From NCBI GenBank assembly GCA_002269645.1, contig NIVC01000416.1, positions 124,001 through 188,000 on the forward strand: a stretch of DNA of 64,000 bases, read 5' to 3'. The notes below the pieces were generated by a model, which worked only from the letters and a program-made list of their open reading frames with translations, had not been told where the DNA came from and ran no database searches. The DNA is from Macrostomum lignano (lineage: Eukaryota). Below, in pieces: positions 10,101-64,000 of this stretch. The translations under genes were made by a program, and so were the position numbers. Every line of letters starts with the position of its first letter. Position 1 is the first letter of the stretch.

Positions 10101-10673
<573 letters not shown>

Positions 10674-11149
10674 ACACAGCAGTTCTTCTTGTCACCGTAA
10701 ATCCCTGTTTGTTCAGAAGTTCTTCCCGAGTTCGAAGGGGATAAAACTCGGCAGTTTTAATTAGCATTTTTAATCCATCGAAAGTTTCGCTATACAACTG
10801 TCTTTGTCAAATTGGATTTAAGATATGCCCGATACAACTAGGCAAGAGGAGGAGCTTGGGCGAAAGTCAAATTTGTCCTGGATCTTTCCTGGATGCAAAA
10901 ATGGTTATTTCTTCTCGAATTATTGAACGGGATTAATTCAAAAAATTCAATGCTTTGTCAAACAGACAGAAGTGCCTGTTTCTTGCCAATTGTAAAAATA
11001 AATTGTTCACAAACATACGCTGTTGCAGGGAATGCAAACAAATCCGAAAAAACTGAAACGATTCATGCAAATTTTTAAGAGAAAGATAAACAAAATTTAA
11101 ACACAGTCAGAGTGAAGCAGCGAGTCAGACAGCTAGGTCCTAGACACAT

Positions 11150-25656: not shown

Positions 25657-26520
<864 letters not shown>

Positions 26521-28826: not shown

Positions 28827-30173
28827 CTAGTCTTCGTCTTCGCCGTCGTCGTCGTTTGCTTCGTCCAGCGCAGGCAGTCCGGGATCGCCGAGAGCCCGCC
28901 TGAGCCGCTGACGGGCCCGCCGCAGCCAAAAGAAGTAGCAGACCCGGCTGAAGCAGCGCTGCGCCGGCTGCTGCTGCCCGGAGCCGGCGTCCTGCTCGCC
29001 GAACACCGCCTCGCTGGTGATGCGGACCATCTTTGCCGCCAGTCGTTGCGCCAGCTGCTGCACCTCCGTCTCAGTGGTGGCTCTCGCCAAGTCTTCCCGC
29101 GCCACAGCGTCGGCCAGACGGTCGGTTTCGTCACGCAATTGTCCGACATCTTGCGGCAGGGCCAGCTCGATGTTCTTGTCAAAGCAGACCAGCACCAGAG
29201 TGAGATTGTCGCGGCTGCCAGCCTCAAGGGCGCACTGCAGCAAGTCGCGAGCGACCGTCTGCACCGAGGAGCGTCGTTTCAGCTGGTGCAGTGCGAACTC
29301 GCACACCTCCTCGGTGGTGAACACGTCCCACAGGCCGTCGCTGGCTAAAGCGGCCAGGCGCTCGTGGCCTTTGACAAAGTACGTGCCGTGGTTGATTGAC
29401 GGCTCAGCCGTGACCAGATTGTGCAGGTCGTCGCCCTTGAAGTCGTAGTCGCCGAACGCCCGAGTGACCATCAGGCCGTGGCCGAGCTTGTCGTGCGGCT
29501 TGCGCAGGCCCCGGTCGCGGTCCATCTCGTAGCGCAGGCCGTCGAACCTCTGGCGTTCGGTTCGGATCTCCACGGTGCTGAGCTCTTTATTAAGGATGTG
29601 CGCCACAGAGTGATCCACGGTGACGCGGTTGTAGTAGTTGCCGTAGTCTATGTACACAACGCCGCGACTGTCGCCGCAGTTAGCCAGCAGGAGGTGCCTT
29701 CGGCAGATGAGCAGCACGACGGCGGTGCTGCCGCACGAGTCGGCCCGGTTGCGTTGGTAGTCGATCTCGCGTCGGATCTTCCGATCGTAGCCTAGGAAAA
29801 GTCGGCGCAGGCAGTCGCGGTAGTCGCAGATGGGACTCTGCTGGGCCAGCAGGCTGGTCAGCTGCTCGTCTTCGATCAAAAAATCAAGGAAGCTGCACTT
29901 CTCCCTGACACAGAAGGTCGAAACCCAGTCGCCGCCGTGGCCATCGTAGACGGCGAAGAACGACGCCTGGCCGTAGACGGGGTGCCCGGTGCGCACGCTG
30001 GCCCGGGCGGTGTACCGGTCCTCCATATGCGGTCTGTAGCCTTGCACAGTGCAAACTCCATAGCTGAGACCGTTGCCAGAGCCGCCGGCGCGCGAAAAGT
30101 TCAGCATGGGCTGCACCAGAAGCTCATTCTGCGACTGGCGCCGCGGCCGGACCAGCTTTGCCGCACCATTCAT
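28827..30173 (-). CDS. Protein phosphatase 2C (PPM1A/B-like), single exon, divergent flap region
   Basis: 448-aa ORF with PPM motifs GNGLSYG..VQGYRPHMED, VYDGHGG, CGSTAV, ANCGDSRG, VTRAFGDYDFK, LASDGLWDV, GSRDNLT; acidic C-terminus. Confidence 0.93.
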   Translation of the reverse strand: MNGAAKLVRPRRQSQNELLVQPMLNFSRAGGSGNGLSYGVCTVQGYRPHMEDRYTARASVRTGHPVYGQASFFAVYDGHGGDWVSTFCVREKCSFLDFLIEDEQLTSLLAQQSPICDYRDCLRRLFLGYDRKIRREIDYQRNRADSCGSTAVVLLICRRHLLLANCGDSRGVVYIDYGNYYNRVTVDHSVAHILNKELSTVEIRTERQRFDGLRYEMDRDRGLRKPHDKLGHGLMVTRAFGDYDFKGDDLHNLVTAEPSINHGTYFVKGHERLAALASDGLWDVFTTEEVCEFALHQLKRRSSVQTVARDLLQCALEAGSRDNLTLVLVCFDKNIELALPQDVGQLRDETDRLADAVAREDLARATTETEVQQLAQRLAAKMVRITSEAVFGEQDAGSGQQQPAQRCFSRVCYFFWLRRARQRLRRALGDPGLPALDEANDDDGEDED

Positions 30174-47500: not shown

Positions 47501-50500
47501 CATCATTTTATTTCTGTGGTCAAACTTTTAGTTAACAGCATGGAAATGTTTCTAAAAAAATCTAAAGCATTTACAAGTCTCCATAGGCTCTTATATTGGC
47601 TCAATTTTTCAAAGCTTTATAGAATAACAAACGGCAAGAAAATAACAAAATAATTACTAGGCCAGACTGCACACTGTATTTATCCATTGTACGGGCCAAA
47701 GTGCAAATTTGGTGCAATGCACAATAAACACAAAAAAGTTAATTCGCAACAGCAACCCGTAGCCAGCCAACAAAAGAGACGGACACGCAGGTGAATGTGT
47801 TAAGCGCAGTTAGTGATTTAGCAATTTCGGCTTTGAAATCGACGTCGTTCTTGATGTTATCCATTTGAATTTGAAGTTAAAGCCCGAGAAGAAACAAACA
47901 AATCTCTATCACTTTCATATGCTCAAAACTTCCAAACCAAGCCGTTCAAGTTGTGACATTAAGCGGTGGAAGAGACTGATAAGACGTTTTTCAACGATTT
48001 AAAAATTGAGAATATGCAGCTTTGATGTGTAATTCGACGTTACATCCTTGCATTCACATTTATGACCCCAAGATCAACCTGCAGGTAAGCTGATGTCAGG
48101 TAAAAATCGGCCAAACGATTCACAACTCACCTTAATAAACGCCGTACTCCGAGAATTCTCGCTAGACGCAAACACTGATTTGTGCGAGAAGAATCGTCGC
48201 ATAAATTTGTAGCCCCTGGAAACGCTCTGCGGCGTCGGCAGCAGATTGCAGGGCACCGGCAGGGTGCTGCCGTTGTCGATGTAGTTCAGCCACAGCTTGG
48301 TGCGCGCGAACTTCCACTCGACGTCGCATTCGCTCTGGTTTGAGTATTTACGAGTATATTGTAGACTGTTAGGAGCTTGGAATAAAATAATACACAGTAT
48401 AAAACCATACTAGGAGCCTAGAAAGCCGAATTAGCCCCGATGTGTAGCAGTGTCCAAAGTCTACTGCAAACTACGAGGTAACTAATAACTATTAAGAGCA
48501 TTGTCAAGGATACAAAAGTGTCGAAATATATGTATCAATAGAGAAGGTCTTGATTATTGAGCAGCATCATCGCATTGAAATCGAAACACTGGAATACGTT
48601 TCTTAATTTTTCAGTTAGACTTCAAACTTTTCTTTTTGTAATGTTAGTTATTCGTTATTAGTTTTATCCTATTACAGTATACAAAATATTAATGCATAAA
48701 ATCACTTTCTAAATAAACTGAAATTGTTCCAAACAATAATAAATTTATTTTAGTCAATTCAAAACATATGCAATAGCTTTTTAACGATATTGCTGTCCTA
48801 CCTGAATATCTTCAAATGAATGCGACATCATAGCGATGAGCATATTGATGAGCACAATAATGATGATCACGTGATAGAATGCCATCAGCGTCATTCCAAC
48901 TGTTTCCACAACCTCTGTGGACGAGTTGGTCTTGATCATACCGTCCTTGTACTGGTACTGAGCGTCATTTGGATTGCTGGCATCGTACGGATGCTTGATG
49001 GGCAGGGAGGCCAGCTGGAAATTGTTGAACATTGCCCAGAACAGGGTGAACAATGTGTGAACAAGACCCTCGAACGGCTCCGTGGCCGGTTCCTCCACCG
49101 TGAACGTCTGATTGCCAACTTCAACGATTCGGGCGATGCGCTGCAAGCCGTAGTACCAGTACAGGTTGTGCATGCCGACCATGAAGGCAAGCAGCACCTT
49201 GATGTCCAGTTTTGATGAAGGATTTTGTTAGAAGAATAAATAGCGTATCTTTTGCACTACTCACTATAAGTAGCTTCAGCTATCTAGCTCGTACTAGTAT
49301 ATTTTTATTGTATGATGAAATGAAGCATTGGGTACTGGGTCAGAAACCATATCATCAGACTGACTAAAAACTGTGAAGTATTCAAATATTCCGGCATTAT
49401 ACAAGATACAAGATACTAAGCTACCCAAAAGCACCCCTTAAATAGCGAATTCAAGTAAAATCCTTGGTTTTCACTGCTTCTGAGCTTCCATCTATGGCCA
49501 AAATCAACAATTCTGACATCTTAAAAAAGTTAGGCTCATCAGAACCTTTTGAAGCAATTTCGGCTTCATCGAAAACAATTTAATAATTCACTTACCAACG
49601 CAAACAGCACCAAAAATCGAGCGATGTCGGTCAGCATCCGGCTAAATGAAATCTGCAGCGGGCCCAATACTTCGAAGGCCGGCATTAAGAAGATAGTTCG
49701 AGCAAAGCTGAGCACGTTGGCCACCGCAAAGAGGACGTCAGACACGATTTCAGGATCGTGAGCTACCCAGTTGAAGCGGGCTGTACCGAAAAAATCGAGG
49801 AAAAATACGAATAAATCTCCATTGCGCTACTATCCATTTTAATTCAGTAGTAAAACCAGCACATTTCTACTTGCATGCTTCCAAAAAGTACATGTATCTG
49901 CGACAAGTCTCGTTAAGCTTCATCATCTGCATGAACTGGTTGAATTTGACTTCCAGATCTTTGATTCGAGTGACGTTCGAGTAGGTGACATTGGTGAGGA
50001 ATTCGGCAGCCAGCTGGGTGGCATTGTAGCAGTTGTTCGCCTCCTTTATCTTCAGGTCCACTATGATGCGGATGGTGTAGGAGGCGATGTACAACGACAG
50101 GATGAAGAAGTTCAGCATGCTGTAGGCGTTCAACACCACCTCCTTGATGCCCTGGAAGTACACCTGCTTGATCTCGGAGACTAAGTGACCTGCGGGTACA
50201 AGTTTGTTTAGTGGGTGTTAGAAAATCAAGCAACCTCATCATTGAAAACTTTACCGTCCCTTTGATACACAACAATCACTTTGGTACGCGCTTTGATACA
50301 CGACAATCTCTTTGGTACGCGCTTTGATACACAACAATCTCTTTGGTACGCGCTTTGATACACGACAATCTCTTTGGTACGCGCTTTGATACACGACAAT
50401 CTCTTTGGTACGCGCTTTGATACACGACAATCTCTTTGGTACGCGCTTTGAAACACGACAGTCTCTTTGGTACGCGCTTTGATACACGACAATCTCTTTG

Positions 50501-52129
50501 GTACGCGCTTTGATACACGACAATCTCTTTGGTACACGCTTTGATACACGACAATCTCTTTGGTACGCGCTTTGATACACAACAATCTCTTTGGTACGCG
50601 CTTTGATACACGACAATCTCTTTGGTACGCGCTTTGATACACGACAATCTCTTTGGTACGCGCTTTGAAACACGACAGTCTCTTTGGTACGCGCTTTGAT
50701 ACACGACAATCTCTTTGGTACACGCTTTGATACACGACAGTCTCTTTGGTACGCGCTTTGATACACGACAGTCTCTTTTGTACGCGCTTTGATACACGAC
50801 AGTCTCTTTGGTACGCGCTTTGATACACGACAGTCTCTTTTGTACGCGCTTTGAAACACGACAGTCTCTTTGGTACGCGCTTTGATCCACCGAAATCCAG
50901 AATCTTTTATTTATTTGGAGGGCCACTCTGCCAGTCCCAGATAGCACTTCATGATACAAATAGCTTGACTAGCTAGCGTTTACGGCATCAGATGTTAAAA
51001 AGATTTATCAAACAATAGATATTATTTACGATCGTGCAAATACAATAGAATGATTTTGGAGAGCCTACCTGCCATGCCAGATCATGACAAAACTGGACAC
51101 TTGTGCACTAATGGTGAAGAGCTTCAGAGATCTCCCGAAAATTCTCCCGGCAATGTTTTTTTGCATAGCTATTGTTCAGTAAACACGTGAGATAATCCTT
51201 TGTTCTTTCACTTTCTACTGCTAACAAAGATCAAATTATCGTGACTATTCAATGAGCGCTCCGATCAACCCAACTTTGAATAATCCAATTATCATGATTG
51301 CAGATGCCGCAGAACAATAGTATTGGCGTGGTTAGTAAACAAAGCAATGAACTCAGTAAAGTATTTTCCAACCTAAAATAGGTTTGCGGAAAATTAATGC
51401 CTCTCTAATGAAATTTCATGAGCTGTTTAAGCCAACTCTATTCCGAAATAGCTTTGCAACCCCAGGCGACACCCACCCCATTCTATGCCCCGGTCAGCTA
51501 TCTCGTTCGGAATTAACTTTCTACCCCAGACCCCAGACGACACCCACCTCACGCCATGCCCAAGCTCTCTCTCTCCTCTGGAATTACCCCAGACTACACC
51601 CACCTCACGCCACGACCAAGCTCCCTCTCCACTGAAATAACTTTCTACCCCAGACGACACCCACCTCACGCCATGCACAAGCTCTTATCTCTCCTCTGGA
51701 ATAACTTTCTACCACGCGCATCATCCTTGCGCCCTGCCCCAGATAACTATCTCGCCCAGACTAACATTTCTCGCCCACCCACTCCATATCTGACATGACT
51801 CATAGCTGTTCAATTTTTTAGAAACGCACAAGCTTAAGTTTTAAACAAACCTCAAACCATAACCACCCACCTGCAGTCCACAATATTATCAATATCTGCA
51901 CCGGCGTTATCACTGTACTCTCCGGTCGCAGCATTTTCTTTAGAAATGTCTTTCTCTCCTCAATGGTGTTGTTAAACCTCTCTCTGGCCATCTCGTTAGC
52001 GACAGGCGCGTGCGTTACCGAAGTGTCGTCGACGCGAAAAGTGGCAGCGGCCAGTAGGACAAGAAACAGGAAATGAGACACGGTGTGCGTGGCAAACTTG
52101 GCTGCCGGGCAGCGCAGGCCCTTGGATAC
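41583..52129 (-). CDS. TRPC: TRPC-like transient receptor potential channel, 3' part (N-terminal ankyrin exons not seen; presumably beyond the window)
   Basis: Exons 52129-51871, 50189-49875, 49780-49596, 49197-48802, 48334-48131, probable 46199-46137, ~44170-43999, 43578-43468, 42329-42145, 41897-41583. Motifs KF..HT.S..FL, LGPLQISFSRMLTDI, LFWAMF pore helix, LINMLIAMMSHSF, TRP box EWKFARTKLW, C-terminal coiled coil. Exons between 46.1 and 42.4 kb are incompletely resolved. Confidence 0.9.
46662..46950 (+). mobile_element. tRNA-derived SINE, second copy (A-box present, B-box region deleted)
   Basis: ggggttgtagccaagtggttagagcgtcggacttacga head; shared body with the 18.1-kb copy; (ttat)n-like tail. 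Confidence 0.7.
50260..50884. repeat. 31-bp minisatellite
   Basis: ctttgatacacgacaatctctttggtacgcg. Confidence 0.96.
51440..51710. repeat. Degenerate ~60-70-bp repeat in TRPC intron
   Basis: Recurrent ccccagacgacacccacctcacgcca...ctctcctctggaat. Confidence 0.7.
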
Positions 52130-52254: not shown

Positions 52255-53552
<1,298 letters not shown>

Positions 53553-54524: not shown

Positions 54525-57466
54525 TCACAAAATGCCGCGTTTTTTCATTTCATTGAAAAACTTCGTTTTTATTTTATGGATCGATCGTGACTGGAGTGCA
54601 GGTTCGCGTGCTTTTAGCTCTCCAAGGGCTGCAAAACCAGGTACTTTGCCGTCTTCGATCTTTTCTATCGCGCGGTTAATTGCCTCATTTTCGTCTTTGT
54701 TCCACGCAATGTGCTCCTGAATTAGTTTTTTCTTGACTTCTGAAATGGATTGAAGTAACTGAAATCAACTTTGGTTTTTTTCTTCCCCCCAGTTCCCATT
54801 TTGTCCTTACCTTCCGAACTAGGAGCGCTTTTGTCCTTCTGTGGGTCCTCTTGTCCGGGTCCTGGCTCGCTTTTGTCCTTCTGTGGGTCCTCTTGTCCGG
54901 GTCCTGGCTCGCTTTTGTCCTTCTGTGGGTCCTCTTGTCCGGGTCCTGGCTCGCTTTTGTCGTTCTGTGGGTCCTCTTGTCCATGTCCTGGCTCGCTTTT
55001 GTTATTAGTCGTTGTTGCTGTCGCACCCTTTGGCTTAGTCGTCCTTCGAATCCGCCTTTCGTTTGCTCTAGCTTTCTGCACTTTTCTGGTTTTTTTCGTC
55101 GGTTGGTAGTCTGAATCGTCTTTGTCTACTTCGCTTTCATATTCATCTGAGTCGAGCACAGCTAATCGATTCTTCTTTTTTTCGACTTGCTTGATGGACA
55201 GGGGGCTCCGCGAAAGTCGACAGAACCTTCGTGATAAATTGACTCGTCCTCAAATTCCTTAGCTTGGATACGAGCTCCATTATTCTCAGGAGGTGCTTGA
55301 CTCTTTTGGTCACCACGTTTTAATTCTCGAGCCTGTGAGCCTATTGAGGCTTCCACATCACCGGATTCGTTCAAATCATCTTTTTTTGCATCTGACTTAT
55401 CGTCAATGTCATAGTCAATTTCGATGTCGTTAACATCAATCTCTTCGATAGTTTTGCCTTTAAGCTGGTCGAATCTACCGGCCTCGATAGCCAGAAGTAG
55501 CTTGCCTACTTTAGCAAGCTCAATAGTGTTTTCATGCAATCGATAGAAATTATGGTGAACATTAAGGCTATGTCCAAGATGGTTGGAGAGCCATCCGAGC
55601 TCATTTTCTCTCATTTCAAGGATCTGAGAGACAGTGGCAATGTATTTTCGAAGGTTGGTCGAAGATAGACGAGCAGGGAACTGGAGCCCTTGACAACTGG
55701 AGACAACATTTGTGCGCGCAACGAATGGGGATATATATCCCAAACTTCCACTACTGCAGAATACGTAAGGACTTGAAGCGTGGTGTCTTGTGCGAATGAG
55801 CTCATCGATAATTTCAGCAATCTCATTCGAAACTAGCAGAGGAACCGGTCGCTGTGCTCTCTTACCTCGAACATTAACGATAGTCAACCGGTAAAGCATT
55901 TGCTTTTCTAATTCACTTAGCGCAGATAATGTTGTATCATCAACATCTTTGCATGATCTTGCTTTCTGCCACGCCGAAACTCGCAGCTTGAAGGGCTCAG
56001 ACGCCCGGCGCTTGTTGAAAATAGACAAACGAATCGCAACATATTCGGCCACCTCTTTCCAGTAAGAAGGGCTGCTTTTTAGCTTTTCCGTGTCGATGTG
56101 GCTTAAATATTCGTTAATGTGCTTCGTGATTAACTGAATGTCGCTAGTTAACGGCAATGTCTGACCCTTGTCAATTTTTCTTTCTTTCAAGGACAAAAGT
56201 GCAATCGAAGATATTTTACGGCTCCATGATGTTTCATACAGAGTGATGAAGTTGCGTCGCTCCTGAGCTACTTCGGGCATTTCGCATTTCAGGGCACGTA
56301 CTAACGACAGTTCAGCAGCCAGCTTCAGAGAAAACCCGCACTTAAGTGCCATCGAAGGAATAGAAAAAGAATCGCAAATCTGAGCATCTTCTTGGGCCGT
56401 AAATTTCGCTACATTTCGAGTCGCCTCAACAACTAAATCAAATGATGATGGCTTCAGCAAATCGTCAAGACAAGCGCTGGGATCGCCCATAATTTCACGA
56501 GCTGACATAAGTAATCTCGACATTTCACGCATTTTCGCAGTTACAATTTTCTTTCCTGTCTTTCCGGATGTAAAACCTTCATAGGCGTAGTAGCCAAGTT
56601 CCATTATAAGCTTGTCTGATTGAGCTACTTTGCTACATGAGTCTACCTTCATTTTATTAATAAGTTCAATAAATTTGGACGGATATTTCGCCGGAAAGCA
56701 TGATGCAAGGAGAAGGCAGCGTCCTGCACTGACAGCTTCTGTGCGCCTGTTCAAATCGCTGACATTTACGACAAAGCGGCAGCGCTGAACATGCCTGCTT
56801 AACTCAGTTTTACGATAAAATCCAAAACAGTGAATGCACGGCAAATACGAAACTTCATTATCTTTCATGTCCGAAGAACTTCTTTCGCGACACACAATGA
56901 TTCCTCCCTCCTTCTCCTGGGTCATAACTTTTATGTTATGTTCGTAATCTCCTCGAAAGCGCAAGCGATCAAATTCCTGGTCATATTCTGAAAAAAATAT
57001 GAACAGATAATTATTTTCAGACAAACTAAATACTACTATGAGGACCTACATAAAAAACTTATTTCAAAAACTTACTATCAGACTTAGGATTAAATGCGAG
57101 GGCGCGCTGTACACACATTTCCTTCGAGTGTGCCCGAATAAGATGCCTTCTGATCTTCGAAAACATTTCTCCGCAAAAGAGGCAGCAATGCCTCTTCTTC
57201 TCATGCTTAAGTTTCGCTTGGGACGGAACTAAATCATCAGACCAGACTTCCTCCAAATAATAATCTTCATCACCATCTTCTTCCTCGAGTTCAGCGTCCT
57301 CAGGTAGTATACTCGTATTTGCAATGTCCCTTAAAGCTGAGTGCAACCTTCCACCAAGAATATCGTCTACTACCGTAAGATTTTTGTCCACAAACGAATC
57401 ATCATCTACTAAATCGAAAGCAACGTCTATCCTTGCTTTGGTAGCATCGCCGTCTCTATCGCAAAC
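54525..57466 (-). mobile_element. Crypton-type tyrosine recombinase (YR) transposon gene, spliced
   Basis: Exons 57466-57076 and 56987-~55162 (88-nt GT-AG intron), ~55190-54811 (reached by a frame change), and 54739-54525 (71-nt intron). YR motifs FNKRRASE (R), RGKR (K), STNLRK (R), HLGH (H), HHNFYR (Y). N-terminal C-x2-C..H segments (CLFC..RHL..H; PCIHC..RH..C); C-terminal W..E..A..VPG..EPAL..R..IK helical domain. Confidence 0.85.
54830..54995 (-). repeat. 42-bp coding repeat (KSEPGPGQEDPQKD) in the YR C-terminal linker
   Basis: Four in-frame copies in ORF 54722-55159. Confidence 0.85.
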
Positions 57467-58292
57467 CTGAAAAATAAACAGCAAGTTACATAGCTTAGAT
57501 ATACTCATTAGCTCATTTTTCCTGAAAAGTCAATAAGTCAATTCTCTGAAGCACTACAACGCGATAATCTAAGTCAAAACGTTTAGACACCCTTCATTTA
57601 GACAGTGCAGACGTTCTGATCTCATGGTGGACCAGCTCGCTTTCTAAGAATCTGTTCTGATTGCATTCCAAGAAACGGAAACATTCCCGCACTAAACTTT
57701 CAAGACAGCTCTGAGAGCCAAAGCCCCAAACAGACTGAGAGAGCTGCTTCAGTTGTGTCTGTAGGTTAGGTGGACCACCTTCCAAGAGTCAAAGCCCCAA
57801 ACAGACTGAGAGAGCTGCTTCAGTTGTGTCTGTAGGTTAGGTGGACCACCTTCTCTACAGCACTACTAGGCGATAATCTGAGTCGGAATGCCTTGAGACC
57901 ATTCATTTACACAGTGCAGACGTTCTGATCTCATGGTGGACCAGCTCGCTTTCTAAGAATCTGTTCTGATTGCATTCCAAGAAACGGAAACATTCCCGCA
58001 CTAAACTTTCAAGACAGCTCTGAGAGCCAAAGCCCCAAACAGACTGAGAGAGCTGCTTTAGTTGTGTCTGTAGGTTAGGTGGACCACCTTCCAAGAGTCA
58101 AAGCCCCAAACAGACTGAGAGAGCTGCTTCAGTTGTGTCTGTAGGTTAGGTGGACCACCTTTTAAGAGTCAAAGCCCCAAACAGACTGAGAGAGCTGCTT
58201 CAGTTGTGTCTGTTCTGTAGGTTAGGTGGACCAGCTTCTCTACAGCAATTGAGTTGCAGCTAGCTACTTTGAGATCATCAAGCGAAACTCAC

Positions 58293-58517
58293 TTTTCTGG
58301 ACTCGGTGTCGACGGATTTGCCAGTAGACCGACGATTTTCACCAGGCGATGCGGCCTTCTTCGAGGCTGGAGTAGCGCCTGCATCCGCGGTAGCGTTGTG
58401 CGACTGAGCGCCTTCATCAAGGCGTGATGCAGAGCGCGAACGGCTTCGCGATTTCCGCCCTCTTTTTGAGGCACCAATGCGTTCGATTTGGCGGGAACGA
58501 AATTCGACCTCAGGCTC
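58293..58517 (-). CDS. Repeated symmetric exon copy 1 (75 codons, EPEVEFRSRQ...VDTESRK)
   Basis: Acceptor tttttattctctaacttcctag|GAG, donor AAA|gtgagt, open frame, phase 0/0; expression unverified. Confidence 0.55.
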
Positions 58518-59802
58518 CTAGGAAGTTAGAGAATAAAAAGACAAGTCAAAGTCGGAAGCTTAAATTCAAAACCGCTGCCGTGTATCCGTGTGACCCTCAA
58601 ACAGACTGAGAGAGCTGCTTCAGTTGTGTCTGTAGGTTAGGTGGACCACCTTATAAAAGTCAAAGCCCCAAACAGACTGAGAGAGCTGCTTCAGTTGTGT
58701 CTGTAGGTTAGGTGGACCACCTTCCAAGAGTCAAAGCCCCAAACAGACTGAGAGAGCTGCTTCAGTTGTGTCTGTAGGTTAGGTGGACCACCTTTTAAGA
58801 GTCAAAGCCCCAAACAGACTGAGAGAGCTGCTTCAGTTGATGTCTGTAGGTTAGGTGGACCACCTTTTAAGAGTCAAAGCCCCAAACAGACTGAGAGAGC
58901 TGCTTCAGTTGTGTCTGTAGGTTAGGTGGACCACCTTCTCTACAGCACTACTAGGCGATAATCTGAGTCGGAATGCCTTGAGACCATTCATTTACACAGT
59001 GCAGACGTTCTGATCTCATGGTGGACCAGCTCGCTTTCTAAGAATCTGTTCTGATTGCATTCCAAGAAACGGAAACATTCCCGCACTAAACTTTCAAGAC
59101 AGCTCTGAGAGCCAAAGCCCCAAACAGACTGAGAGAGCTGCTTCAGTTGTGTCTGTAGGTTAGGTGGACCACCTTATAAAAGTCAAAGCCCCAAACAGAC
59201 TGAGAGAGCTGCTTCAGTTGTGTCTGTAGGTTAGGTGGACCACTTTTAAAAGTCAAAGCCCCAAACAGACTGAGAGAGCTGCTTCAGTTGTGTCTGTAGG
59301 TTAGGTGGACCACCTTATAAAAGTCAAAGCCCCAAACAGACTGAGAGAGCTGCTTCAGTTGTGTCTGTAGGTTAGGTGGACCACCTTATAAAAGTCAAAG
59401 CCCCAAACAGACTGAGAGAGCTGCTTCAGTTGTGTCTGTAGGTTAGGTGGACCACCTTATAAAAGTCAAAGCCCCAAACAGACTGAGAGAGCTGCTTCAG
59501 TTGTGTCTGTAGGTTAGGTGGACCACCTTATAAAAGTCAAAGCCCCAAACAGACTGAGAAAGCTGCTTCAGTTGTGTCTGTAGGTTAGGTTGACCACCTT
59601 TTAAGAGTTAAAGCCCCAAACAGACTGAGAGAGCTGCTTCAGTTGTGTCTGTAGGTTAGGTGGACCACCTTCCAAGAGTCAAAGCCCCAAACAGACTGAG
59701 AGAGCTGCTTCAGTTGCGTCTGTTCTGTAGGTTAGGTGGACCAGCTTCTCTACAGCAATTGAGTTGCAGCTAGCTACTTTGAGATCATCAAGCGAAACTC
59801 AC

Positions 59803-60027
59803 TTTTCTGGACTCGGTGTCGACGTATTTGCGAGTAGACCGACGATTTTCACCAGGCGATGCGGCCTTCTTCGAGGCTGGAGTAGCGCCTGCATCCGCGG
59901 TAGCGTTGTGCGACTGAGCGCCTTCATCAAGGCGTGATGCAGAGCGCGAACGGCTTCGCGATTTCCGCCCTCTTTTTGAGGCACCAGTGCGTTCGATTTG
60001 GCGGGAACGAAATTCGACCTCAGGCTC
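59803..60027 (-). CDS. Repeated symmetric exon copy 2 (75 codons)
   Basis: Near-identical to copy 1; same acceptor and donor; phase 0/0. Confidence 0.55.
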
Positions 60028-60358
60028 CTAGGAAATTAGAGAATAAAAAGACAAGTCAAAGTCGGAAGCTTAAATTCAAAACCGCTGCCGTGTATCCGTG
60101 TGACCCTCAAACAGACTGAGAGAGCTGCTTCAGTTGTGTCTGTAGGTTAGGTGGACCACCTTTTAAGAGTCAAAGCCCCAAACAGACTGAGAAAGCTGCT
60201 TCAGTTGTTTCTGTAGGTTAGGTGGACCACCTTATAAAAGTCAAAGCCCCAAACAGACTGAGAGAGCTGCTTCAGTTGTGTCTGTAGTTTAGGTGGACCA
60301 CCTTTTAAGAACTTCTCTACAGCAATTGAGTTGCATGCAGCTAGCTATTTTGAGATCA

Positions 60359-61402
60359 TTAAACGAAACTCACTTTTTTGGACTCGGTGTCGACGTATTT
60401 GCGAGCAGACTGACGATTTTCGCCAAGCGATGCGGCTTGGCGTCTATCACCGTCATTTTGCTGAAATATGTTAGGTAGTGCTTTCGAATCCGGTTTTTTC
60501 GTGTCATGATGTGTCATAGGAGCGGTAGCCTTTTGAGTCGCTTCATTTAGGGCGCTGTCTAGCGTCGGAAGAGTTGAAATGATTTGGTCGATTTCAGTAA
60601 AATTTTTTTTATTCGAAACGAAATCTTGGTGCTTTTGGCTTAATGTTATGTGCTGATTAAAGTCGTCGTAGGCTTCGCGACAGTTTTCACACCGACCTTT
60701 CCGTTTTTCTTTGCCGTCAGGCTTTTGACGATTTTTTTCATCGTTATTATTAGCCCTTGGGTTTGCAAAAATGTCGACGACATCAATGTTATCTTTGAAG
60801 ATTGGTCTCAGCAAATGCTGGGCATCCGTAACAACAACGGCCGGTGGGGTCAAATTCCGATCTTCTTCGGCAAACCTCCCTGAAGAAATAGTTTTCTGGC
60901 ACAGCTCGTGTTGAGAAACTTGATCGCGAATTCGATCTCGAAATATTGCCGGAGTGTAGACAGGTATTTGCAGCAAGCGAGCTTTCGTCAAAATATCTTC
61001 GAATGTTTTGACAATTCTGCATTGCGAACTCGAAGTTTGCGTAACGGCTCTCTGCTGCATGGTGAAACCCCTAGAAAACTCCGAAAAAGATTGTTTAGCT
61101 TCAATGGAGACAGCGGAATCGTCAGCGATGATTAAATCAACCTGGAAAAGCAAAAAATACGAGCCCATAGCTACAAAAAATCTATCAACGTCTCTAATCT
61201 GCCCTATTAACAAGCAACAAACAAAAACAACGAATGCATTGCAAAAACTACACACCTCATTTGAAAAAAACGAAGCAACGCTTCCGCCATAATAGACGAC
61301 GGCAGATTCCAGCTTCTTTTGTCGCTTTTGACTTTCGCCGTACAGAAAAAAAACTCGCTTCCCTCGAAGAGAATCCAATGTAAACTGCTCGACCAAACAG
61401 CC
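60359..61402 (-). CDS. DBF4: Dbf4/ASK-like Cdc7 kinase activator cassette (2 exons), embedded in repeat array
   Basis: Exons 61402-61256 and 61141-60374 (114-nt in-frame intron). Motif N/BRCT (LRGKRVFF..VYYGGSVASFFSNEVDLII), motif M (LTPPAVVVTDAQHLLRPIF), motif C zinc finger (KGRCENCREAYDDFNQHITLSQKH). Starts at an acceptor (ttttttttattttagtttctacag) and ends at AAA|gtgagt, or at stop 60359 if that donor is unused. Confidence 0.85.
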   Translation of the reverse strand, partial: GCLVEQFTLDSLRGKRVFFLYGESQKRQKKLESAVVYYGGSVASFFSNEVCSFCNAFVVFVCCLLIGQIRDVDRFFVAMGSYFLLFQVDLIIADDSAVSIEAKQSFSEFSRGFTMQQRAVTQTSSSQCRIVKTFEDILTKARLLQIPVYTPAIFRDRIRDQVSQHELCQKTISSGRFAEEDRNLTPPAVVVTDAQHLLRPIFKDNIDVVDIFANPRANNNDEKNRQKPDGKEKRKGRCENCREAYDDFNQHITLSQKHQDFVSNKKNFTEIDQIISTLPTLDSALNEATQKATAPMTHHDTKKPDSKALPNIFQQNDGDRRQAASLGENRQSARKYVDTESKKVSFV

Positions 61403-61911
61403 CTGTAGAAACTAAAATAAAAAAAATTTCTCACATATTACTCCATTACGGAAACGCCTAAACAGTACATAAGTTTTGACTGTAGGTTAGGTGGACCACC
61501 TTCTAAGAGTCAAAGCCCCAAACAGACTGAGAGAGCTGCTTCAGTTGTGTCTGTAGGTTAGGTGGACACCTTATAAGAGTCAAAGCCCCAAACAGACTGA
61601 GAGAGCTGCTTCAGTTGTGTCTGTAGGTTAGGTGGACCACCTTATAAAAGTCAAAGCCCCAAACAGACTGAGAGAGCTGCTTCAGTTGTATCTGTAGGTT
61701 AGGTGGACCACCTTCCAAGAGTCAAAGCCCCAAACAGACTGAGAAAGCTGCTTCAGATGTGTCTGTAGGTTAGGTGGACCACCTTCCAAGATTCAAAGCC
61801 CCAAACAGACTGAGAGAGCTGCTTCAGTTGTGTCTGTAGGTTAGGTGGACCAGCTTCTCTACAGCAATTGAGTTGCAGCTAGCTACTTTGAGATCATCAA
61901 GCGAAACTCAC

Positions 61912-62127
61912 TTTTCTGGACTCGGTGTCGACGGATTTGCCAGTAGACCGACGATTTTCACCAGGCGATGCGGCCTTCTTCGAGGCTGGAGTAGCGCCTG
62001 CATCCGCGGTAGCGTTGTGCGACTGAGCGCCTTCATCAAGGCGTGATGCAGACGCAGAGCGCGATTTCAACTTTTTCGAAGCCTCAGACTGGTCGAGCTC
62101 AGGAGAACGAAATTCGACCTCGGGCTC
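61912..62127 (-). CDS. Repeated symmetric exon copy 3 (72 codons, EPEVEFRSPE...VDTESRK)
   Basis: Variant 5' part, 9 nt shorter, frame preserved; tag|GAG ... AAA|gtgagt. Confidence 0.55.
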
Positions 62128-62565
62128 CTAGGAAGTTAGAGAATAAAAAGACAAGTCAACGTCGGAAGCTTAAATTCAAAACCGCTGCAGTGTATCCGTG
62201 TGACCCTCAAACAGACTGAGAGAGCTGCTTCAGTTGTGTCTGTAGGTTAGGTGGACCACCTTCTCTACAGCACTACTAGGCGATAATCTGAGTCGGAATG
62301 CCTAGAGACCATTCATTTACACAGTGCAGACATTCTGATCTCATGATGGACCAGCTCGCTTTCTAAGAATCTGTTCTGATTGCATTCCAAGAAACGGAAA
62401 CATTCCCGCACTAAACTTTCAAGACAGCTCTGACAGCCAAGGCCCCAAACAGACTGAGAGAGCTGCTTCAGTTGTGTCTGTAGGTTAGGTGGACCACCTT
62501 TTAAGAGCTTCTCTACAGCAATTGAGTTGCAGCTAGCTACTTTGAGATCATCAAGCGAAACTCAC

Positions 62566-62781
62566 TTTTCTGGACTCGGTGTCGACGTATTTGCGAGTAG
62601 ACCGACGATTTTCACCAGGCGATGCGGCCTTCTTCGAGGCTGGAGTAGCGCCTGCATCCGCGGTAGCGTTGTGCAACTGAGAGCCTTCATCAAGGCGTGA
62701 TGCAGACGCAGAGCGCGATTTCAACTTTTTCGAAGCCTCAGACTGGTCGAGCTCAGGAGAACGAAATTCGACCTCGGGCTC
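62566..62781 (-). CDS. Repeated symmetric exon copy 4 (72 codons)
   Basis: As copy 3; phase 0/0. Confidence 0.55.
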
Positions 62782-63407
62782 CTAGGAAGTTAGAGAATAA
62801 AAAGACAAGTCAACGTCGGAAGCTTAAATTCAAAACCGCTGCCGTGTATCCGTGTGACCCTCAAACAGACTGAGAGAGCTGCTTCAGTTGTGTCTGTAGG
62901 TTAGGTGGACCACCTTCCAAGAGTCAAAGCCCCAAACAGACTGAGAGAGCTGCTTCAGTTGTGTCTGTAGGTTAGGTGGACCACCTTCCAAGAGTCAAAG
63001 CCCCAAACAGACTGAGAGAGCTGCTTTAGTTGTGTCTGTAGGTTAGGTGGACCACCTTTTAAGAGTCAAAGCCCCAAACAGACTGAGAGAGCTGCTTCAG
63101 TTGTGTCTGTAGGTTAGGTGGACCACCGTATAAAAGTCAAAGCCCCAAACAGACTGAGAAAGCTGCTTCAGTTGTGTCTGTAGGTTAGGTGGACCACCTT
63201 CCAAGAGTCAAAGCCCCAAACAGACTGAGAAAGCTGCTTCAGTTGTGTCTGTAGGTTAGGTGGACCACCTTATAAGAGTCAAAGCCCCAAACAGACTGAG
63301 AGAGCTGCTTCAGTTGTGTCTGTAGGTTAGGTGGACCACCTTTTAAGAGCTTCTCTACAGCAATTGAGTTGCAGCTAGCTACTTTGAGATCATCAAGCGA
63401 AACTCAC

Positions 63408-63623
63408 TTTTCTGGACTCGGTGTCGACGTATTTGCGAGTAGACCGACGATTTTCACCAGGCGATGCGGCCTTCTTCGAGGCTGGAGTAGCGCCTGCATC
63501 CGCGGTAGCGTTGTGCAACTGAGAGCCTTCATCAAGGCGTGATGCAGACGCAGAGCGCGATTTCGACTTTTTCGAAGCGTCAGACTGGTCGAGCTCAGGA
63601 GAATGAAATTCGAACTCAGGCTC
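63408..63623 (-). CDS. Repeated symmetric exon copy 5 (72 codons)
   Basis: As copy 3 with several substitutions, no stop; phase 0/0. Confidence 0.55.
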
Positions 63624-63700
63624 CTAGGATGTTAGAGAATAAAAAGACAAGTCAACGTCGGAAGCTTAAATTCAAAACCGCTGCCGTGTATCCGTGTGAC

Positions 63701-64000
63701 TAGGGATGTCGATTCCCCGGGGAATATTCTTATCGGGGACCCGGGGAATTTACTGTCATTCCCGGGGACCCCGGGGAAAATTAAAAATAAGTTAAAAACG
63801 GCGAATAACTTTGGCTTAGATCTTAAATGGCATTTTAAACTTTGATTTTAGCTTTAGACTACATGTTCAAGGCGCAAGGGTAAAAACTAAACAATCTCTA
63901 CCTATAAAAATGAAAACTCTGTCTGCGTGTGTGTCTGTGTACAAATTACTTTGCTATGGACTCCCAAGTCCCAAACCGCTCAACCAAATTACGATAACTT
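63701..64000 (+). mobile_element. Probable hAT-like DNA transposon terminus interrupting the array
   Basis: The repeat context ...tatccgtgtgac breaks abruptly into TAGGGATGTC (Ac/hAT-like TIR start YAGGGATG), followed by subterminal ccggggga/cccgggg repeats; the other end is not in the window. Confidence 0.45.

Follow-up and report, generated by a model that had tools for sequence, protein, structure and literature searches.

A second activator of the Cdc7 kinase, DBF4B (DRF1), occurs in vertebrates as a lineage-specific paralog of DBF4 that carries the motifs N, M, and C. Host-transposase fusion genes, in which host exons are spliced to the open reading frame (ORF) of a transposon, were reportedly described by Cosby and colleagues in Science in 2021. 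Among tyrosine-recombinase elements, Crypton transposons have been described together with Crypton-derived fusion genes (ZMYM2-4, QRICH1, KCTD1, and KIAA1958) and with a recombinase sequence in an intron of ATF7IP in birds (PMC3212892). Here we describe a locus of Macrostomum lignano, a flatworm with a free-living habit, at which a truncated paralog of DBF4, hereafter the Dbf4 cassette, is fused to a tandemly repeated exon upstream of a gene for a Crypton-like tyrosine recombinase. The locus lies in a 64,000-nt stretch of contig NIVC01000416.1 (assembly GCA_002269645.1, positions 124,001-188,000 of the forward strand), hereafter the window, to which coordinates refer unless another locus is named.

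As in host-transposase fusions, splice-phase compatibility at this locus would let exons of other origin be read with a mobile-element ORF. In those fusions the transposase gives a DNA-binding domain to a host gene, whereas here a host regulatory module has apparently been added upstream of an apparently complete recombinase, in a tandem exon array. DBF4B (DRF1) is a complete, independent gene; the cassette, in contrast, lacks a start, a tail, and a stop, and ends in a foreign exon tail. The locus is similar to Cryptons and Crypton-derived genes in combining a tyrosine-recombinase-only gene with introns with host-type domains, and to the bird ATF7IP case, in which a recombinase ORF lies in a host intron with predicted splicing to host exons (PMC3212892). 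The processes are known ones (exon shuffling by segmental duplication, tandem exon amplification, and fusion of host and transposable-element genes), and the locus is a new instance of them. Nothing relevant was found in the literature searched on Dbf4 as a partner of Crypton-derived genes, or on DBF4 in connection with Macrostomum or gene capture.

We hold it to be moderately probable that an old paralog of DBF4, duplicated at the DNA level, was welded to a repeat exon and is read as a module of the recombinase unit. The structural part of this account is well supported, whereas we infer its functional part, which would be either a fusion isoform or a separate small Dbf4 capped by the spliced leader (SL).

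The Dbf4 Cassette and Its Motifs

The cassette consists of two exons (Table 1), both with lengths that are multiples of three and with canonical AG/GT splice sites. Exon 1 begins at a strong acceptor (a T-rich tract followed by CTACAG/G, the slash marking the splice site), contains no in-frame ATG, and has a product identical to residues 1-49 of the UniProt entries A0A1I8HXN8 and A0A1I8FWK5. Exon 2 encodes motif M (PPAVVVTDAQHLLRPIF) and the zinc-finger motif C (CENC..H..H), and its terminal 63 nt (60374-60436) are repeat-exon sequence. The spliced product of 305 amino acids, from an intact 915-nt ORF with intact zinc ligands and motifs, is 100% identical to A0A1I8HXN8 of M. lignano. As a stand-alone gene the cassette is incomplete: its own start codon, the C-terminal tail of ~300 amino acids, and a stop are absent, and the ORF leaves exon 2 through the donor.

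The Dbf4 identity of the product is confirmed. The Pfam zf-DBF profile matches the cassette product with 59.1 bits (cutoff 24.8; E = 4.4e-16) over its full length (1-45), and motif C aligns with the DBF4 zinc finger in the Dbf4-dependent kinase (DDK) structures of yeast (7pt6) and human (4f99), with the C-x2-C...H...H ligands kept. Motif M, in this family the proline-rich stretch that binds Cdc7 and lies between N and C, aligns with PPFIKVED.S..YRP of 18 DBF4 proteins in a trimmed alignment of sequences. For motif N, the Pfam BRCT match is weak (20.1 bits, just below the cutoff of 21.3; E = 7.7e-4), and the block GKRVFF..GG.V..FFS.EVD.II of the cassette aligns well with the DBF4 resident in the M. 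lignano genome and with others. The cassette appears to retain the N-M-C motifs of a Cdc7 activator.

Table 1. Features of the Dbf4 cassette, the repeat-exon array, the recombinase gene, and the resident DBF4.
Feature	Position	Strand	Description
Dbf4 cassette exon 1	61256..61402	-	147 nt, phase 0/0; GCLVEQ...FFSNE; first half of motif N (BRCT-like)
Cassette intron	61142..61255	-	114 nt, GT..AG, phase 0
Dbf4 cassette exon 2	60374..61141	-	768 nt, phase 0/0; remainder of motif N, motif M, motif C, short linker
Single-copy segment	60437..61471	-	1,035 bp: exon 1 with 69 nt of its 5' flank, the intron, and 705 nt of exon 2
Junction module	60311..60436	-	63-nt exon tail (AASLGENRQSARKYVDTESKK), GT donor at 60373-60372, ~63 nt of intron; ~90-92% identical to the repeat-exon modules
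Whole array	57543..63700	-	five ~350-bp exon modules, nine blocks that together hold 37 copies of the 71-bp unit, four 184-bp non-coding units, Dbf4 cassette
184-bp non-coding units	57543, 57852, 58937, 62262		four copies
Repeat exon, 216-nt type	63408..63623	-	phase 0/0; TAG/G acceptor, AAG/GTGAGT donor
Repeat exon, 216-nt type	62566..62781	-	
Repeat exon, 216-nt type	61912..62127	-	directly upstream of the cassette
Repeat exon, 225-nt type	59803..60027	-	directly downstream of the cassette; spliced to it in A0A1I8HXN8 and A0A1I8FWK5
Repeat exon, 225-nt type	58293..58517	-	
Crypton-like tyrosine-recombinase gene	54525..57466	-	exon 1 57466-57076, phase-0 acceptor TTTCAG/G; exon 2 from 56987, recombinase core
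Resident DBF4			Mlig017237g1/g2; PAA77783.1, PAA74425.1, PAA75346.1; 594-597 amino acids; two coding exons

Relationship to the Resident DBF4 Gene

The nearest non-self relative of the cassette is the M. lignano protein Mlig017237, with E = 1.2e-17 in an exhaustive HMMER search of 1.8 billion representatives and E = 2e-24 by BLASTP. Mlig017237 is the resident DBF4 of this species, because it is always found between a ferlin gene and an Ariadne-type E3 gene, in a syntenic arrangement that recurs at three loci of the Mlig_3_7 assembly. The preliminary description of this DNA, made from the letters alone, had named as its own refutation orthologous DBF4 genes of related species at the present TRPC-intronic locus and with the same 3' end; the resident M. 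lignano gene instead lies elsewhere, at those three loci. Cassette and Mlig DBF4 formed a clade in 199 of 200 bootstraps of a neighbor-joining analysis of 19 N-M-C proteins, the long branches of which are open to long-branch attraction and to that extent weaken the grouping.

Like the cassette, the resident gene carries N, M, and C in the same order in two coding exons with the same intron, and it too has an acceptor at its 5' end and no genomic ATG. Unlike the cassette, it has an Ala/Ser-rich tail of ~300 amino acids and its own stop, a higher GC content at third codon positions (GC3; 0.64 vs 0.42), and the ferlin-DBF4-Ariadne neighborhood. The cassette intron (FFSNE/VDLII, phase 0) falls at the exact position and in the phase of the only coding-sequence intron of the resident gene (FFSKQ/VDCLI), which supports duplication at the DNA level. 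DBF4 of the monogenean Cichlidogyrus reads through the same site without an intron. A processed retrocopy is ruled out, since the parental intron is kept at the same position and phase and a 3' A-tract is absent; none was found at the 3' junction of the cassette. These comparisons show the cassette to be a truncated paralog of Macrostomum DBF4 that arose by DNA-level duplication and not by retroposition, and the argument from the retained intron advanced in the preliminary description is thereby sustained.

Two observations concern DBF4 introns as such. The intron of the resident gene (locus L001, ~10177-11054) is filled with a ~25-bp tandem repeat. In Cichlidogyrus casuarinus DBF4 B (KAL3313207.1; locus L002, 3193-3228), an annotated 36-nt intron removes VNYVITTKHHSQ, which matches the conserved strand of motif N, and this intron is probably mis-annotated.

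The cassette is an old duplicate, because it shares only ~30% amino-acid identity with the resident DBF4 over conserved columns, has no nucleotide similarity to any of the three resident loci, and differs from them in GC3. The idea of a freshly captured host gene accordingly gives way to that of an ancient paralog, in which only the junction looks young. That its ORF, zinc ligands, and motifs have outlasted so much divergence suggests that coding constraint acted on the cassette during most of its past. Its GC3 (0.41-0.45, about 0.42) is close to that of the recombinase gene (0.41) and below that of neighboring host genes (0.60-0.82); the match at ~0.41 suggests that cassette and recombinase may have been co-resident for a long time.

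Junction With the Repeat Exon

A self-BLAST of positions 60250-61600 against the window recovered no other copy of 60437-61471, so the proposed ~1-kb unique Dbf4 insert in a repeat module is indeed single-copy over 1,035 bp. The 69-nt 5' flank within this segment showed no similarity above that of shuffled sequences to the 71-bp unit or to a normal acceptor flank. On its low-coordinate side the cassette is 92.5% identical over 187 nt to 62446-62628 and 63288-63470 (E = 4e-75), and the module core alone matches 60314-60436 at 90%. Alignment with the five exon modules shows that the shared stretch comprises the last 63 nt of the exon (the cassette tail AASLGENRQSARKYVDTESKK against the module tail AASPGENRRSTRKYVDTESRK) together with the GT donor and ~63 nt from the intron, and thus agrees with the earlier observation that the tail of exon 2, its donor, and the downstream intron are homologous to the 3' end of the repeated exon. 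Followed from the low-coordinate side, homology to the modules ends at 60436, within one base of the limit first suggested (~60437). The 71-bp units do restart on the other side, as had been noted, although at 61472 and not at ~61479; the 7 nt between these positions are a mismatched unit edge. By self-BLAST and alignment, the junction between unique Dbf4 sequence and a repeat-exon module is genuine. Strictly, the "insert" is a replacement, since a repeat exon would have its acceptor flank and its initial ~153-162 nt at this place. After codon 284, cassette exon 2 continues in frame into the final 21 codons of that exon, followed by the donor and downstream intron of the same exon.

The five modules are nearly identical to each other across the stretch that they share with the cassette. 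Differences private to the cassette are five substitutions in the exon part and four substitutions with a 4-nt indel in the intron part. With a divergence of ~8-10%, the junction differs much less from the modules than the cassette does from its parent gene, which suggests either a recent weld to the repeat exon or a similarity maintained by gene conversion.

The junction could have formed in either of two directions, and the differences private to the cassette tail are consistent with each. In the reverse direction, the repeat exon would have been built from the native 3' end of the Dbf4 paralog and a 5' piece of other origin, and then amplified; this alternative, which concerns origin only and is compatible with any functional reading, we regard as somewhat unlikely. 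It would account for the fact that all nine substitutions and the indel are private to the cassette, as expected of an outgroup or source copy, although homogenization of the modules after the weld gives the same pattern. A cassette-like variant of the module (..ENRQSARK..) and a hybrid exon are found in the UniProt model A0A1I8JFG5, which represents another locus. The 216-nt exon type also weakly matches the tail of the resident DBF4 (BLASTP E = 0.017), but this match is not significant: shuffled sequences scored as well in 92 of 2000 cases, and in 603 of 2000 for the 225-nt type, and it was therefore rejected as evidence that the repeat exon derives from a DBF4 tail. Moreover, the module is coherent as acceptor flank, exon, and donor flank, whereas the cassette has only its 3' third.

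The hybrid exon, known from the protein model, was reproduced exactly in silico by joining a 225-type 5' part, CCAA, and a cassette-type tail. Because of this exon and the ..ENRQSARK.. variant, we conclude that cassette tail and repeat exons have probably exchanged sequence at another locus. In the same model, Dbf4 exon 2 is shortened and frameshifted, and five exons of the 225 type are read in the wrong frame. The final ~290 amino acids of the model (after ...EDGK) have no counterpart in the window and no Pfam match, and may reflect another genomic context or a chimeric model.

The Repeat-Exon Array and the Downstream Recombinase Gene

Read along the minus strand, the array presents three 216-nt exons, the cassette, and two 225-nt exons, with blocks of the 71-bp unit and the 184-bp units between them. 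All five repeat exons (58293-63623) are open in frame 0, with phase 0/0, TAG/G acceptors, and AAG/GTGAGT donors; three of them are open in frame 1 as well. The array is more than a repeat: its units are phase-0 exons that lead into the recombinase gene, a context absent from the preliminary description, and the phase of the cassette suits every one of these exons. A homolog search with two concatenated repeat exons gave no matches, though even models that contain the exon were missed by it.

The recombinase gene continues, 3' of its core, into a K-rich tail and a last exon with a stop at 54527-54525. Its protein carries two C2H2-like zinc fingers, and the 620-codon core ORF has homologs that are 28-34% identical, in several copies per genome, in bivalves and beetles. 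In an AlphaFold (AF2) model with a predicted local distance difference test score (pLDDT) of 72, the top eight fold matches in the PDB were XerH, XerA, and IntI4 (probability 0.99-1.0, E from 7e-4 to 2e-2), followed by a sharp drop, and the modeled structure corresponds to a two-domain tyrosine-recombinase fold. Residues R340, K388, R459, H485, and Y494 are invariant in 20 homologs, with the Cre/lambda-like spacing R-26-H-9-Y (assigned by eye); the His expected three residues before the second Arg is a Thr (STNLRKY).

Sequence searches of Pfam and the PDB did not identify the family, with neither DUF3504 nor Phage_integrase above threshold. Among 14 family members there was one weak match to Phage_integrase and none to DUF3504. 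Domesticated DUF3504 genes, in contrast, have lost their catalytic residues; here the putative catalytic R, K, R, H, and Y are invariant across the 20 homologs. A further difference is from Crypton transposons proper, since termini, a target-site duplication, and multiple dispersed copies were not found at this locus: no terminal repeats link 53.5-54.7 kb with 63.6-64.0 kb, no target-site duplication was seen, and near-identical recombinase models in M. lignano number only about three. The label "Crypton-like" is used here by analogy with the elements of PMC3212892; given the lack of termini, the low copy number in M. lignano, and the lack of a DUF3504 or integrase match above threshold, a place among the Cryptons is putative. 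The patchy, multi-copy spread of the family in bivalves and beetles is transposable element-like, and the family, for which no Pfam model exists, looks like an undescribed or unnamed Crypton-like family.

The Spliced Leader and the 5' End of the Cassette

The spliced leader of M. lignano ends in ...TTGCATG, and the acceptor motif for trans-splicing is [T/C]TNCAG; 30-39% of the genes of this species are trans-spliced, many of them from multi-gene precursors. The resident DBF4 is annotated as 5'-partial. Its coding sequence starts 9 nt past a TTGCAG acceptor (locus L001, 9985-10001; likewise loci L003 and L004), and the nearest upstream ATG is out of frame. The cassette acceptor, CTACAG, fits the trans-splicing motif, and an SL-derived ATG would stand in frame with the coding sequence of the resident gene and with that of the cassette (CTACAG/GGC TGT...).

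As far as can be read from these sequences, the ancestral gene, like the resident DBF4, was probably trans-spliced and received its start codon from the SL, and the cassette would begin at a phase-0 acceptor without an ATG because the ancestral start codon came from the SL. An exon with a phase-0 acceptor would be a ready-made internal exon once a donor lies upstream of it. Where the SL carries the start codon, trans-spliced genes would begin at such acceptors and would be pre-adapted as in-frame internal exons, to be swallowed whole.

Linkage of the Cassette to the Recombinase

Phase 0 is found at every exon boundary of the array, in both cassette exons, and in recombinase exon 1, and because all boundaries share this phase, any combination of these exons stays in frame. 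Among the gene models in UniProt, A0A1I8HXN8 and A0A1I8FWK5 have Dbf4 spliced to the next 225-nt exon, and A0A1I8JFG5 (1,855 amino acids) runs from three repeat exons through Dbf4 exon 1 and further exons to the recombinase. Downstream of the cassette donor, AATAAA or ATTAAA signals outside coding sequence first appear at the recombinase stop, and none precedes recombinase exon 1. At both loci for which models exist the cassette stands between 216-type and 225-type exons, and because this position is common to both, the arrangement predates their divergence; the exon numbers differ, which is consistent with unequal crossing-over.

These features suggest, with less certainty than the structure itself, that the cassette may serve as an alternative two-exon module of one transcription unit, in the order repeat exons, Dbf4, repeat exons, recombinase. 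The predicted isoform would combine the recombinase with a module that would bind and activate Cdc7, and through which the recombinase might be linked to DDK or to origins of replication. A separate, SL-capped small Dbf4 might also be made from the same pre-mRNA.

Several observations weigh against an account in which the cassette is read together with the recombinase. The fusion is known only from gene models, which may be predictor output on ML2, an older M. lignano assembly of poor base accuracy that is criticized in PMC5730564. In other cases, too, predictors have attached host exons to members of this recombinase family, as in a model from Sinanodonta that joins a PRMT_C fragment to the recombinase. 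The cassette occurs in no protein of the transcript-based GenBank annotation of Mlig_3_7, and the copy in A0A1I8JFG5 reads as frameshifted. Nearly all changes that distinguish one copy of the repeat exon from another are nonsynonymous (up to 8:1), conservation in the flanks equals or exceeds that in the exons, and purifying selection was not seen. The recombinase frame breaks by one base at a run of five C (55200-55204) relative to A0A1I8J1L2 and A0A1I8JFG5; this shift, which costs the protein its K-rich tail and its conserved C-terminal domain, may be a genuine frameshift or else a homopolymer or assembly error. The start codon donated by the SL, finally, is deduced from sequence.

In the Sinanodonta woodiana model just mentioned, the PRMT_C fragment (E = 1e-26) precedes the recombinase homolog, and the model is either a fusion of host and transposable-element genes or a prediction artefact.

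The absence of the cassette from the GenBank core-gene annotation, together with its lack of a start, stop, and tail of its own, could also mean that it is a dead relic, a leftover piece of a gene in an intron or in a region rich in satellites, with its function recently lost and its spliced models artefactual. The lack of purifying selection in the repeat exons, the frameshifts in the recombinase of the window and in the A0A1I8JFG5 copy, and the large share of simple and tandem repeats in this genome (15%) would all be expected under such a reading. We nevertheless consider it improbable, as the 915-nt ORF, the splice sites, the zinc ligands, and the motifs are intact although nucleotide similarity to the resident gene has been erased and GC3 has moved from 0.64 to 0.42. 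At the rate seen in the junction (nine substitutions and one indel in 126 nt), several frameshifts would be expected in a neutral ORF of 915 nt, and there are none. The same intact protein is obtained from at least two loci (A0A1I8HXN8 and A0A1I8FWK5), and the frameshifts in models derived from ML2 may be assembly errors (PMC5730564).

If the cassette is alive, it need not be joined to the recombinase. Three models, including A0A1I8HXN8 and A0A1I8FWK5, begin exactly at the exon-1 acceptor, as SL-trimmed transcripts would, and may represent an independent small DBF4 paralog, trans-spliced to the SL, with one or two 225-nt repeat exons as its 3' exons, a separate or operonic recombinase gene that is itself trans-spliced to the SL, and no fusion protein. 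Such a gene would suit a species with an SL that ends in ATG and with frequent trans-splicing from multi-gene precursors. Recombinase exon 1 likewise opens at a phase-0 acceptor (TTTCAG/G), A0A1I8J1L2 is a stand-alone recombinase model, and compact N-M-C Dbf4 proteins of 240-320 amino acids are encoded in other eukaryotic contigs. Model starts at the acceptor could, however, equally come from breaks of contigs or transcripts in the 71-bp arrays. There is no in-frame stop before the donor, the models ending open at ...TESRK; no canonical poly(A) signal separates the cassette from the recombinase gene; and A0A1I8JFG5 has a cis junction between an upstream repeat exon and Dbf4 exon 1. An independent gene is therefore unlikely in our judgment, and an old paralog read as a module of the recombinase unit remains the reading that we prefer.

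A stronger version of this preferred reading, in which the DBF4 paralog has been recruited, by way of an SL-donated start codon, into a catalytically competent Crypton-like recombinase that would thereby carry its own Cdc7 activator and origin-targeting module, seems doubtful. Were it true, a eukaryotic tyrosine-recombinase element would be tied directly to the replication-licensing machinery. Should the fusion be expressed, it would be a natural case of a mobile-element recombinase with a replication-kinase activator, would suggest replication-coupled recombination or targeting, and would point to a general route by which genes may fuse where the AUG comes from the spliced leader. If it is not expressed, the locus offers a clean and datable example of DNA-level exon shuffling, with concerted evolution in a tandem exon array, in a repeat-rich neopolyploid genome. 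For annotation, the partial UniProt proteins labeled "DBF4-type domain" and "C2H2-type domain" that stem from this locus call for caution.

Genomic Setting

Repeats make up more than half of the M. lignano genome, and the window contains 48 tandem-repeat rows. Its minisatellite arrays (>20, with units of 14-72 bp) are typical of this genome, and very long pure microsatellites are present, namely (GACA)324, (ATAG)216, and (TCTA)143 (examples at 52257-53552, 25659-26520, and 10101-10673). Two further genes lie on the minus strand. A single-exon PP2C phosphatase gene (28827-30173; 448 amino acids; Pfam E = 2e-41) has a very high GC3 (0.82), in contrast to the recombinase and the cassette, which are AT-rich. 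A TRP-like cation channel is represented by its transmembrane and pore exons (48162-52081), which lie downstream of the recombinase gene at a distance of 2.4 kb from its stop; the N-terminal exons of this channel are outside the window, and the array and recombinase unit may or may not be intronic to it. At the exact outer edge of the array (63701-63790) there is a cluster of CCCCGGGG/CCCGGGG palindromes, which has no other match in the window.

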